Source: Paragordius varius
Taxonomy: Eukaryota; Animalia; Nematomorpha
NCBI GenBank assembly: GCA_964247055.1
Contig: OZ176053.1
Location: forward strand, 7,936,001 to 8,000,000
DNA: 64,000 bases
Direction: 5' to 3'
Shown one piece after another: positions 9,753 to 36,100 of this stretch. Position 1 is the stretch's first letter. Each line of letters opens with the position of its first letter. Below the pieces are notes generated by a model. The model made no database searches, was not told the origin of the DNA, and saw nothing but the letters and a program-made list of their open reading frames with translations. Made by a program: the position numbers and the translations under genes.

Positions 9753-12700
9753 TTAGTAGGGAGATTTTTGATAATATCCTTCTGAAATCATCGGGGATCT
9801 ATATATCATTTTTTCTTCAATATCTTTAAGGGCATACTTGTGATCACAAAGTTCTAGGGCCTCCCATTCAGCCTTTTTCAAAAATATTTCAAATTTTTAA
9901 ATAAAATGCGGTGAAATTTAAATAACGATTAAAACCGGAATCATTATGATCGCAATTACACAATTTTTTGTAGCGGGTTTCGGTTCCGATTTCAAAAATT
10001 TTGTTTTCCCAATTTTAGTTATGTCCCGTCTACTTTGTAATAAATTATAGCATAATTAGTTTATACGATATGAAAAAAAAACAAAAAATCACACTATAAA
10101 ACGTAAATTTATTGTATGCTATAATATATATTTTTTAAATTAATAGATAATTTGATAATTCATATAAGAAAAGTGGTAAATATATGGTTAGGGTTGTAAT
10201 ATAAATTAAATAAATGTTTTAAGCGTATTTAACAAAGCTATTGATTCTAAATTTTTTAAATAGCTAAAGAAAATCTCAATTTGATCCTCGGTTTGAAAAG
10301 TTGAACATTAGAGTTCAAATTAAGCATCATACTTATAGCTTAAATAATAAGGCCATATTAAAATTGGTAAAAGATGTTAAAAACAAGGTTTATAAGACTA
10401 TAGATTGATTAATTCAACATAAAGATGATTAAATTTGTTTAATATTAAATTAAAAATATTCGTCATAACCCATCATAACCGCGTACATCATATATTTTAA
10501 TAACCTGATAAACAATATTTTTTTATAAAAATTGTAACAAAATATTTCGGATCTACTGATCTCTATCAATTATATGAAATATTTTATTATTTTAATAAAT
10601 TTATTTTACACAAGTTATTAACAAATTGGTTATATATTAAAACTGGTCTTTGCATAATTGTATCTTGAAATAAAAAAAATCTTTAAATATTTGCAATTAT
10701 TAAAGCCATATAGATACTACCTTAAAAGCTTGCTTAGGGTCAGGAGGCATGGCCATTGCCGCGCCCGACATTTGATCCTGCATTCCTTTCGTTTGATCAG
10801 CCGCTATGATGATTAAAAAAATTTTATTGCAAATCGCTTTTATGGATACAAATCAACAACGATTCTCAACAAAATTTAATTTTAGGTTTCATGTATCGGT
10901 TATATGGGTTTTAACTGTTATAGGGTGAACAAATAGGTGTAAGATATAATTTTATCTTTTTTCCTCTCAAAATTGATGATTTAAGCACGAAATGAATTTA
11001 ATCAGACTTGCTCACAAATTTAATTATTGTCCCTATTAATAATTTATAAGATGACCTATATAACATCTATTATGACTGTAAACAGTGCAATGATAAACAA
11101 GATTAATAAGATACTTACCATTATTTTCGCCTAATACCAAGGCATATATGCTTCGCAATCCGAAAACATTGAGAAAGTACCAAGATGCGGAACTTACCCT
11201 AAATAAAATAATTTATATATATATATATATATATACATTGGTATTTAATAAAAATGGAAATTACCATGAAGCATCTAATGATTGTAATTCTACACCCCTC
11301 TGCAACATCGGTTTAAATCGGAGTGTCAAGGGGAATGGGACTTTCGCTATATATATATATAATATAAAGAAGTGAAAATTGTTGCAAAAAGTAAATTATA
11401 TTTATATATAGGGGGCTATATTAAATCATAAATAAAAAAATTTATTCTACTATTCACACCGTGGGGTTGCAAACATATATAAAATAATTTGATTAAGCAT
11501 TAAAGACTTTTTCTTGACAGTAAACGCTCGATATATTGCACATTATAAATATAAACAAATTCAGAAACCATTCTAACCAAAAAAAGTGAGTAAAAGGGCC
11601 AAATCATAAAAATGCAATTCAAAAAGCCAAAGACCATTTGACATTTATAAAACTTTTAAATATATAATAATATTAAAATTTTTTTTGCTAGACATTAATA
11701 ATAAGTGGTAATGGTCCTATAAATATAAAAAAGGATAATATATTATTTGTGAATAAGCATTAAATTGTTAAAACATGGAGAGTATAGGATTTGATACACT
11801 ATTAGGTTTGAAAATATTAGTTTTATATTATTTACAAATTAAAAAAATATATATATATTTTAGGGATATTTAATTTTTTTAAAAAAAGGGAAAATGTAAA
11901 AGAAAGTCGTTTAATAAATTGAAATTGCGATTAACATAATTTAATGAAAAGCATAAATCCATATGTTTTTTTACCTTTAATTTATTAATATGGACTTGAA
12001 AAGCTAATCTTCCCTTTTTATATGTTAGTATCTAATGTTCAATTTTGACAAAATTTAGCCTCAATTTTCTTTTTTAAGCTTATATTAAAAAAATAAGATT
12101 ATGCTACATTAACATACATTATTTAAAAATAAATTGGATATAAACTATCCAAATTAAAATGTAATTTTTATTCTTTACTAAAAATAACAATTATATGAAA
12201 AAATTAAAAAGTTTGACAGCATAAAAAATTTATAATTAATAAGCTAAATAAAGTTATCTTTGATAATAAAATATTTTTTAAAATTATAACTCACTTGTAA
12301 CGAACCCCGAAAATGTCCAATTAATCCAACCACCAATAACAAGCATAGGAAGCATGTTAGTCAAGTTTCCTTTTAACATTTCCGTCATCACACTGGGATC
12401 TAAAACAAATAGTGTTTAATTTTACCTGTCATTGGATTTTGTATTTGAGGCTTTCTTTTTTGAGTTTTGAAAAAACCATTCTCACTATTGTTAAAATAAT
12501 GTTTTCGGGAAAGAAATGCCTACATATATTTTTAAAATACCTGTTTTGGTATAAAGTTGTAATTCTCTCTTAAATTTCGGCTGCGCAACAAAGCTTGACT
12601 ATATGATTAAAATTCTTAAAACCTGTCTTGAATTTGTTGAATATCTACAGGTTTAGCTGTCATTAAAAGTATCGATATATAATGCCTAACAATCCCAACT

Positions 12701-12771
12701 AAGAATGTGATAAGGACTATTGGAATTATGACATAAAATCGAATATCGGGATCCAAAAATAAATCGTGCAT
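9753..12771 (-). CDS. EMC3: ER membrane protein complex subunit 3, 8 exons: 12771-12623, 12598-12541, 12519-12426, 12399-12295, 11346-11265, 11198-11119, 10803-10721, 9872-9753
   Basis: Spliced translation [36 protein letters not shown]...[74 protein letters not shown]...AEWEALEL matches EMC3/TMEM111 end to end. Confidence 0.96.
12400..12425 (-). other. 26-nt intron (EMC3 intron 3)
   Basis: gtaaaattaaacactatttgttttag; frameshift if retained; removal gives NPMTD|PSVMTEM. Confidence 0.93.
12520..12540 (-). other. 21-nt intron (EMC3 intron 2)
   Basis: gtattttaaaaatatatgtag; in-frame TAA if retained; removal gives IPKQ|AFLSRK. Confidence 0.93.
12599..12622 (-). other. 24-nt intron (EMC3 intron 1)
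   Basis: gttttaagaattttaatcatatag; in-frame TAA if retained; removal gives QDS|QALLRSR. Confidence 0.93.
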
Positions 12772-12937
12772 ATTGAATTTTTTCACCTATACGGTCGATA
12801 TTTAAATAATCATGTGTTTTGATTTTTAAGTGCTATAACCTGTCTGCCTTCTTATATGTTTCTCTCATAGTAGCAATTTAAATCTTTTCCTATTATTATT
12901 TTTATATACATGTAGTAGAGAGATAGATATAAAGTTA

Positions 12938-13119
12938 CAGTATGAGTAATCATATACTGCTAGAAAGTTATTAATTATTGCCAAATAGCATATGCAGCAA
13001 AGAGAGTTATTATTGGCTAATTATAGTAAGTGAAAATATAACTATAGGTTAGTAACACTGCCCTTTTTTTATTTGGCAATAATTAATAAATTTCTAGCAA
13101 TGTATACTTACTCATAGTG
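12938..13119. mobile_element. Tc1/mariner-type MITE, TA TSD
   Basis: TA|CAGTATGAGTAA...TTACTCATAGTG|TA; sister copy at 50275-50468. Confidence 0.85.
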
Positions 13120-13586
13120 TAATTTAGAGAGTCATTCCGTTTTCATAATAATATATAAAATGACTTGTTTTGATGTTTTTAGCGTTCATTAGTCATCACA
13201 ATGTTCTGTATAAACCGATCTGCACTGATCTTTAATTAACAGAAAGTATAATTTTTTTAACATCATAACTTGGTCCTTGATAAATTATCTGATTAGAAAT
13301 TCCACATACATTTAAAAGACAATCAACACTTAACAATCTTTTCGCTTTTTTACGCGATGATTTGGGGTGGTATATCCCAGGGCTCAATTTTGTAAACAAT
13401 TATTAGAAAAAGTTATTTTTACAATTTTGTGCTAGAGACTAAAATTGAGACAGTATGATTAAGACTCGTAGCTTATCATTAATTTATATTAAGGTTTTTT
13501 ATTAAAATGTAGCCTGAAATCTTTTATAATTATTTACTTTTTTTAAACATAATATACGTTTATTTCACTGTTGCCTTTTATAAAAT

Positions 13587-14742
13587 TTAACACTTGGATA
13601 CAACACATATTTTAGTCTTTCGATTCAAATTGAGATAGTTAAATACCCCAGGCCTGTTTAAAATTAAATTCTTTAAAAAGTATGGAAGGAATCTAAACTA
13701 TGGCAAAATTTTGCACTTATCTAACATTAACACTTGGATACAACACACTCATTTTAGTCCTTCGATTCAAATTGGGGTAGTTGGATACCCCAGGCCTGTT
13801 TGAAATCAAATACTTTAAAAAGTATAGAAGAAATCGAATCCATGGCAAAATTTTGCACTTATATAACATTAATGAACCTAAATATTTAAAAAATTTTATT
13901 CAAAAATATTTGATATTAAATATTTTAAGCCAAAACCGAAAGGTAAAAATTTCGTCAACGTGACATGTGTCAAATAGTAAAATTAAAAAATAATACAAAA
14001 TAAACCGCTTTTTCTATTTCTATCAATGCTAAATGTAATTTATATTAAAATTTATCTTTAGTTCTACCCTTAAAATTAAATGAAGACGATATTTTGCAAA
14101 AATTTCGTAAAATAAAAATGGCGTCGAAGTAGTTTGAGATGGAACTTTTTTTTCAAAACAAAATTTTATCAAGATCTTTTGGCATATTTATATTATTTTT
14201 ATCAGGATAGAAGCATAAATTTAAATTGGGACCGTTTAAAAGTCCTAATTTAAATTTAGTCTGGGGTATTTAGATACCCCAATTTGAATCGAAGTGTTAA
14301 TAAACCGAAATATATAAAAAAATTCATTCAAAAATACTTGGTATTACTTATTTTAAGCTAAAACTGAAAGGTAATAATTTCGTCAACGTAACATGTGTGA
14401 AATGGTAAAATTAAAAAATAATACAAAATAAACCGCTATTTCTATTTCTATCAATGTTAAATGTGATTCAAATAAAAAATTAGCTTTAATTTTACCCTAA
14501 AAATTAAATAAAGACGATATTTCGCAAAGATTTTGTAAAATAAAAATGGCGTCGAAGTAGTTTGAGATGGAACTTTTTTTCAAAACAAAATTTTATCAAG
14601 ATATTTTGGCATATTTATATAATTTTTATCAGGATAGAAGCATAAATTTAAATTGGGACCGTTTCCTTCAGTAATTTTTTAAAAATATTAATTTAAGTTT
14701 AGTCTGGGGTATTTAGATACCCCAATTTGAATCGAAGTGTTA
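13587..14742. mobile_element. Tandem cluster of piggyBac-like MITE pieces (TTAA-bounded)
   Basis: TTAACACTTGGATACAAC starts at ~13587 and ~13728; AATCGAAGTGTTAA ends at ~14300 and ~14742; internal ~340-bp segment duplicated; full-length reference at 61122-61706. Confidence 0.8.
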
Positions 14743-34933: not shown

Positions 34934-36100
34934 ATGGTCAAGTTTAGTGGAAAATACAAGCTAGTCAGAAGCGAGAATTTCGATAAATATCTGGAAGCAA
35001 AAGGTTTTTTTAGATTTAATTTAGGTGCTAATTTTTTTGTTATAAAAATGGCTACAGCGCTAACGCCGACTTTAGAAATAAATATTGACAACGATGTTTG
35101 GATTCTTAAGGTTTATACAATATTAAAATCCATTACCGATATGAAATTTAAAATTGGTGAAACATTTGAACACAAACGTATGGATGGAACTTTGTGCAAA
35201 GTTTTTTTATTTTATAATTTTAGTAGGTTCGTATGACTATTGAGGATAATAAGTTGATCGAGGAAGAGACGCCTGTAAATAATCCTGAACATTGCCAAAC
35301 AATCGTTCGAATTTGGGAAGATGATGATCATGTAGTCTTAGTATGTTTATCTTAATATAATTTGATAAATTCCGGTTGAGTTGAAAATTTTGTAACGTAA
35401 TATGTTTTCGATTATTTTGCAATCGGTAATCAAGAAATAAATTGACTAGTTCAATCAATTATATTTGTATCCAAATGTCTTTATACGCTTCTTTATGGTC
35501 TATCTTTTTATTTAACTATTAAAATATTTTGTCCCGATTTTATAATTTAGATTCCATTTAAAAAATCTTAGCTTTTATAACCGTACGAATGCTTTTTGTT
35601 AAAAAATAAGAAATTACTTAAATATTCCAAAAATAAGAAATTACTTCAATATTCCACTTTTCTTAATAATAATAATAACCGTATATAATTATGTTTAAAG
35701 CGTACTTTTTTCGATTTAATTTCAATATGATACTTATTTTACTCAAGATAATGCCTTTTTTAAAAAAATATATTATTAATAACTCTTCTTACACAATGAT
35801 TATACTATAGTCATAGTAAAATTTGAATCTATTGAATAAATATGCGATATATTCGCAAATTAATAACTGATTTACTATATTATGGTCATAGAAAATTGAA
35901 ATAAAATTAATATTTATTTTTATAATTTTTTTCTAGTGATAAAATTGATTATGTCATATGACTTGATTTGACAAAACAACCGTATTTTTATGACCTTAGT
36001 GCTTATTTTCATCGATACAATATGTTTTTTTGATGCATCATTTTAGGTCCTAACTTGCAAAGATATTATAGCCAAACGTTATTTTGAACGAATAATGTAA
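34934..36100 (+). CDS. FABP: Fatty-acid-binding protein (iLBP family), 137 aa, 4 exons: 34934-35003, 35025-35200, 35227-35340, 36047-36100
   Basis: FSGKYKLVRSENFDKYLEAKG, FKIGETFEHKRMDG and final strand VLTCKDIIAKRYFERI; three introns at the usual iLBP positions; exons sum to 414 nt. Confidence 0.92.
35004..35024 (+). other. 21-nt in-frame intron candidate (FABP intron 1)
   Basis: gtttttttagatttaatttag, phase 1 inside the Gly codon where iLBP genes have intron 1; retention inserts 7 aa (GFFRFNL) with no stop. Confidence 0.75.
35201..35226 (+). other. 26-nt intron with TAGTAG tandem acceptor (FABP intron 2)
   Basis: gtttttttattttataattttagtag; only the distal AG keeps the frame open (CK|VRMTIEDNKL). 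Confidence 0.9.

Follow-up and report, generated by a model that had tools for sequence, protein, structure and literature searches.

Three consecutive, probable tiny introns at the 5' end of EMC3 in the hairworm Paragordius varius, with in-frame stops at the level of chance

The EMC3 gene of Paragordius varius is interrupted near its 5' end by three consecutive segments of 24, 21 and 26 nt that are very probably real introns. The evidence is of several kinds: i) the anatomy of the gene; ii) the colinearity of its exons with the protein of other animals; iii) intron positions shared with other animals; and iv) the occurrence of the gene as a single copy. Taken together, the most probable reading is that these are genuine U2-type introns, shrunk from ancestral ones and removed by the ordinary spliceosome, and that the stop codons within them are incidental; splicing itself is read from the genomic sequence. 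The segments lie in a window of 64,000 nt (contig OZ176053.1, positions 7,936,001 to 8,000,000 of the forward strand), the G+C content of which is ~27%, the value also reported for Gordionus. Plain coordinates below refer to this window.

Anatomy of the EMC3 gene

EMC3 lies on the minus strand (12771-9753) and consists of eight exons. Exon 1 (12771-12623, 149 nt) opens with the ATG at 12771 and is followed by tiny intron 1 (12622-12599, 24 nt, phase 2, 17% GC), exon 2 (12598-12541, 58 nt), tiny intron 2 (12540-12520, 21 nt, phase 0, 14% GC), exon 3 (12519-12426, 94 nt), tiny intron 3 (12425-12400, 26 nt, phase 1) and exon 4 (12399-12295, 105 nt). Longer introns separate the remaining exons. 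Intron 4 (12294-11347, 948 nt), which starts with GTGAGT, leads to exon 5 (11346-11265, 82 nt); intron 5 (11264-11199, 66 nt) to exon 6 (11198-11119, 80 nt); intron 6 (11118-10804, 315 nt), which starts with GTAAGT, to exon 7 (10803-10721, 83 nt); and intron 7 (10720-9873, 848 nt) to the last exon (9872-9753), which begins AEWEALEL and holds 117 coding nt followed by the TAA. Each of these introns, tiny or long, has GT-AG ends. With the tiny segments taken out, the reading frame is intact over its 256 codons. The GC content of the tiny introns is 14-19%, compared to ~33% in the flanking exons. The sequence-only reading had described a run of 24-, 21- and 26-nt introns amounting to 71 nt, and internal exons of 58, 94, 105, 82, 80 and 83 nt; the run is exact, and the exon sizes all hold.

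Identity, colinearity and copy number

Exons 1-4 were translated separately and each was searched alone against solved structures. Human EMC3 (6ww7_C) was the top match in every case: exon 1 aligned to residues 5-51, exon 2 to residues 52-71, exon 3 to residues 72-102 and exon 4 to residues 104-137. Residue 103 corresponds to the codon that the 26-nt intron interrupts. Residues 5-137 are thus covered with zero gaps, and the three tiny segments therefore have no counterpart in the protein. The Pfam family PF01956 (EMC3/TMCO1 family) matches exons 1, 4, 5 and 6 at family positions 1-35, 86-117, 119-141 and 144-169, respectively. Over the conserved exons, identity to other animals ranges from 60 to 100%. 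For example, the protein of exon 1 shows 65-68% identity to arthropod EMC3, that of exon 6 shows 100% at two of the loci compared (L012 and L041), and that of exon 7 shows 78-81% at three (L009, L010 and L012). A word search of the protein collection with exon 1 gave no match above 68% identity.

When the entire 110.6-Mb assembly was searched in six frames with PF01956, three places were found: the EMC3 locus itself, the related gene TMCO1 on a different contig, and a weak match on contig C2 that is under the family cut-off. TMCO1 is the sole other strong locus, and no intact EMC3 paralogue was seen in that search. The description of EMC3 as a conserved housekeeping gene is supported, and the gene is single copy in the assembly. 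The intact paralogue elsewhere, which the sequence-only reading had named, together with an untranscribed locus, as grounds for giving up its interpretation, was looked for and not seen.

Intron positions in other animals

EMC3 loci of other animals were found by the word search with exon 1, and their contigs were compared exon by exon. Intron 1, which follows ...QD in phase 2, occurs at the identical position in L008 (Stegodyphus mimosarum), L012, L013 and L041, where its counterparts measure about 55-256 nt. Intron 2, which follows ...PKQ in phase 0, has a counterpart of about 1.2 kb at the identical position in L013. The position of intron 4 is common to L012, L013 and L041, and that of intron 6 is common to L012. 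At the position of intron 3 there is no intron in L009, L012, L013 or L041, the four loci that cover it, and at that of intron 5 there is none in any EMC3 locus compared.

Introns 1, 2, 4 and 6 of the hairworm gene thus share codon position and phase with ordinary U2-type introns of L008, L012, L013 and L041. The ordinary introns range from about 55 nt to 1.2 kb and begin with GTATGT, GTTAGT or GTAAGC; introns 1 and 2 of the hairworm gene, at 24 and 21 nt, have weaker 5' sites than their counterparts. Since the position and phase are identical elsewhere, at least two of the tiny EMC3 introns appear to be shrunken ancestral introns. The earlier suggestion that the intron positions are ancestral is therefore borne out for introns 1 and 2, which are found in arthropod-like loci; for intron 3, no counterpart was seen in the four loci covering it.

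Tiny introns in other genes

EMC3 is one of five genes in which such introns were identified. The set consists of 13 introns in EMC3, FABP, TMCO1, Mago nashi and RCAN, all checked by colinearity. The FABP gene lies in the same window (34934-36100, plus strand) and has introns of 21, 26 and about 700 nt. Its intron 1 (35004-35024, 21 nt, GT-AG, phase 1, 14% GC) holds no in-frame stop, and the open reading frame that runs through it shows, against solved FABPs, a 7-residue insertion exactly at 35004-35024. The intron splits a glycine codon at what we take to be the place where vertebrate FABP genes carry their intron 1. After intron 2 (35201-35226, 26 nt, phase 0) the FABP frame resumes; the exon that follows, searched alone, gave no Pfam match, and the read-through frame shared zero words with the protein collection.

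TMCO1 (L006:1474-1850, G000:C5, minus strand) has five short introns of 24, 22, 41, 27 and 28 nt, and a sixth intron begins after the last exon read. The 27-nt intron is without an in-frame stop, and the 37 residues flanking it correspond position for position to residues 71-107 of human TMCO1. Mago nashi (L040) has introns of 25, 24 and 24 nt. Its four exons match the Pfam family at 2-24, 26-45, 47-108 and 111-142, contiguously, and one 24-nt intron (L040:1570-1593, G000:C3:9018054-9018077) is GC-AG, with the Pfam match contiguous across it (45|46). RCAN/calcipressin (L035) has a 21-nt intron with an in-frame stop and a 45-nt GT-AG segment (L035:3333-3377, G000:C4:7193333-7193377), which is open in frame and would add 15 residues if read. 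The latter probably represents an intron of intermediate size that has no stop.

In each gene where later introns are visible, the tiny introns follow one another without interruption at the 5' end. The order of sizes is 24, 21, 26 and then 948, 66, 315 and 848 nt in EMC3; 21, 26 and then about 700 nt in FABP; and 21, 45 and then a further intron in RCAN. In Mago nashi all three are tiny. SOD2, in a 200-kb piece, showed no tiny introns in its covered part, its 5' exons being outside the stretch. Wider scans did not separate such introns from background. When candidate introns were removed to restore reading frames in 264 kb, decoy dinucleotide pairs matched as often as GT..AG or more, and when candidates were chained over the same 264 kb the decoys were again equal to or above GT..AG. 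Codon-position composition, counted on the joined EMC3 exons, was too flat to serve as a coding filter.

In-frame stops

If retained, intron 1 of EMC3 reads AGG TTT TAA and intron 2 reads GTA TTT TAA; intron 3 shifts the frame and brings in an in-frame TAG at its end. The in-frame TAA in both introns of a length divisible by three (3n), and the frame shift by the third, had been noted in the sequence-only reading and are there. That reading went on to call each of the three introns retention-proofed, in the manner of the introns of ciliates that are guarded by nonsense-mediated decay (NMD), and here the numbers do not follow it.

The explanation at issue accepts the tiny introns as real and adds selection: a 3n intron would survive only with a stop in frame, which would direct any unspliced mRNA to NMD, as in Paramecium. 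That all three EMC3 introns give a premature stop on retention is what it predicts, and the genome encodes both Mago nashi and the zinc-binding domain of UPF1. How often stops would occur by chance was estimated from every GT..AG segment in 264 kb that measured 21, 24 or 27 nt and had no more than 25% G+C. Depending on length and phase, 44-67% of these segments hold an in-frame stop, and the chance that both 3n introns of EMC3 do so is 0.35. In the first five cases tested against this null model, a stop was observed in 3 and expected in 2.9. Over the whole set, six of the eight 3n introns contain a stop, as selection would have it, where about 4.6 are expected; two of the eight (FABP 21 nt and TMCO1 27 nt) are stopless, where about 3.4 are expected from composition, and these counts are to be read with n=8 and with the greater ease of spotting introns that contain stops. 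In-frame stops are common in tiny introns because the introns are ~85% A+T and the genetic code is standard.

The lengths point the same way. Eight of the 13 tiny introns are divisible by three, which in this small sample is no deficit and is the opposite of the pattern in Paramecium. The ciliate is a precedent for a selected guard, and the signal is visible there because it has a single stop codon (PMC11334263). An absolute rule that 3n tiny introns always hold a stop is rejected by the two stopless cases, to which the 45-nt segment of RCAN may be added. A moderate selected depletion of stopless 3n introns may exist, given a sample of only 8 in which stop-holders are easier to spot. The in-frame stops of EMC3 are at the level of chance and are probably not a safety device; retention-proofing is not supported, and the selective explanation as a whole is unlikely. 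More generally, where a genome is AT-rich and its code is the standard one, a stop in frame within a tiny intron is no evidence of selection.

The UPF1 zinc-binding domain was matched in two sets (G000:C1:5917851-5918458 and C1:5941468-5942484) about 24 kb apart, which are possibly a tandem duplicate.

DNA contigs from other samples

Contigs of four runs, from other samples and studies, were compared with the window, and all were DNA-like and colinear with the genome. Runs X4, X5 and X6 had small word shares that could have meant exon-only RNA contigs, but all of them proved to be DNA. Record 7 of X3 spans 12397-12702 with one difference, and record 13 of X4 spans 11999-12726; the tiny introns are present in both. 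In the X4 contig one base of intron 3 (12406) is missing, a change in length of the kind that a non-coding segment tolerates. No DNA joint that skips the tiny EMC3 segments was found among contigs from three samples. That the DNA contigs all keep the segments argues against an assembly artefact and against removal at the level of DNA.

Two further explanations bear on these contigs. In one, the EMC3 locus is dead or untranscribed and the segments are small insertions that have GT and AG ends by accident. In its favour is that the contigs compared were all DNA-like. A dead copy would, however, have had to preserve both a frame of 256 codons that reads without interruption when the segments are taken out and exons as conserved as those described above; it would be the sole EMC3 in the assembly; and its accidental insertions would have fallen, in two cases, exactly at ancestral intron positions, with the same architecture recurring in four unrelated genes. 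This explanation is very improbable. The other is that the segments are cut out of the DNA by programmed elimination in somatic cells. Short AT-rich intragenic segments are eliminated from DNA in ciliates, and this is the one ground on which it was considered, nothing direct pointing to it; GT-AG ends, ancestral intron positions and the retention of the segments in the DNA contigs of three samples leave it close to negligible.

Other features of these contigs were noted. Runs X4 and X5 are labelled with the species of the assembly and come from a different sample. Against the window they show 49 substitutions and 18 gap letters over the 728 nt of 11999-12726, mostly in intron 4, which reflects high diversity or, alternatively, a close relative under the wrong label. 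Upstream of EMC3, at 12841-13174 and 13509-14000, DNA contig depth rises about a thousand-fold, the summed word depth being 250,000 up to 2.5 million. The many joints and loose ends in the same stretches indicate very high-copy repeats, and two similar repeat units are found at 13656 and 13798, 142 nt apart.

Splice signals and the proposed mechanism

Twelve of the 13 tiny introns have GT-AG ends, as do all three in EMC3, and one has GC-AG ends. At the 5' end, the first base is G in 13/13, the second is T in 12/13, and the third is A in nine introns and T in four. At positions 4-6 only A and T occur. A G at position +5 pairs with U1, and it is found in 0/13 of the tiny introns. The longer EMC3 introns begin with GTGAGT, GTAATT, GTAAGT and GTAGTA. 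A pyrimidine at -3 (12/13) and a common A at positions 8-11 from the 5' end are, in 85% A+T, inseparable from background. No tiny-intron 5' end resembles (A/G)TATCCTT, and the minor, U12-type, class was rejected for these introns. A search for U12 snRNA gave no match in the 110.6-Mb assembly, a result that says little because the control was also without a positive anywhere.

The genome contains a full-length U1 snRNA gene (124 bits) with a normal 5' end (ACTTACCTG) and a U2 snRNA gene (178 bits) with the normal branch-binding box GTAGTA. With canonical U1 and U2, nothing points to a specialised RNA machinery. The U1 genes are clustered, about a dozen to a cluster, and many of the copies are degenerate (G000:C6:565000-634000 and C6:3718000-3734000), and the U2 copies form a large array (G000:C3:257000-528000).

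The preferred reading, in which shrunken U2-type introns are handled by the ordinary spliceosome, can be put as a sequence of steps. The first three introns of EMC3, ordinary in the ancestor, would have contracted to 21-26 nt and been left with few signals: G-T-(A/T) and no G at +5 on the 5' side, nothing but A and T in the interior, and Y-A-G on the 3' side. The canonical U1 and U2 snRNAs in the genome suggest that the ordinary spliceosome would remove them. It is reasonable to suppose that a 21-nt intron has little room for U1 and U2 at once, and as 21 nt would not seat the two particles side by side, a sequential occupancy is proposed. Splice sites would first be paired across the exons of 58-105 nt, and the 5' site would then be handed early to U6 and U5. 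The stops would follow incidentally from an A+T content of about 85% and the standard code, and would not be a selected guard. A retained intron would lead to a premature stop anyway, and the transcript would probably be degraded.

Comparison with known systems

To our knowledge, introns shorter than 30 nt were long believed absent from animals. In a survey of 51 animal genomes they were found only in myxobolid myxozoans and Dicyema; no third lineage is named there and nematomorphs are unmentioned (PMC13644364, Mol Biol Evol, Sept 2026). In the hairworm genome papers examined, the word 'intron' is absent. The evidence inclines us to regard this animal as a third independent animal lineage with introns below 30 nt, and one with two classes of intron, a 5' run of 21-28 nt followed by ordinary or kilobase introns, both served by a canonical spliceosome. 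As EMC3 has four introns of 66-948 nt, the intron lengths of the genome are probably two-peaked and not uniformly short.

Such introns have practical consequences. A lower limit on intron length in a gene finder would break up the 5' ends of EMC3, FABP, TMCO1, Mago nashi and RCAN. The BUSCO score of the Gordionus genome is 71.6% (10.1101/2023.06.26.546503); if gene finders cannot model tiny introns, part of the low completeness scores could be an annotation artefact. Furthermore, a slow-evolving animal in which tiny and kilobase introns occur in one gene would be a cleaner system for studying how a 21-nt intron is recognized, because the same machinery would handle both classes and long orthologous introns are available for comparison.

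The tiny introns of Paramecium are 20-34 nt long, are guarded by NMD and show a deficit of lengths divisible by three in a genome with a single stop codon (PMC11334263). The hairworm introns fall in the same size range, and their retention mostly gives a premature stop. They differ in three respects: i) 8/13 lengths are divisible by three, as against a clear deficit; ii) chance stops are frequent with three stop codons and about 85% A+T, whereas these are rare with one stop codon; and iii) stopless examples divisible by three exist.

The myxobolids and Dicyema japonicum offer the closer animal parallel. Their genomes evolve fast and are compact, the median intron being 22-27 nt long, and the 5' signal of their ultra-short introns is reduced to 'GTa' with a canonical U2 (PMC13644364). 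The hairworm shares with them GT-AG introns of about 20-28 nt at conserved positions between conserved exons, a 5' signal of 'GTa', a canonical U2 and the clustering of tiny introns side by side. In contrast to both groups, its EMC3 is slow-evolving and also holds introns of 315-948 nt, its tiny introns form an unbroken 5' series, and the pyrimidine at -3 is kept in 12/13.
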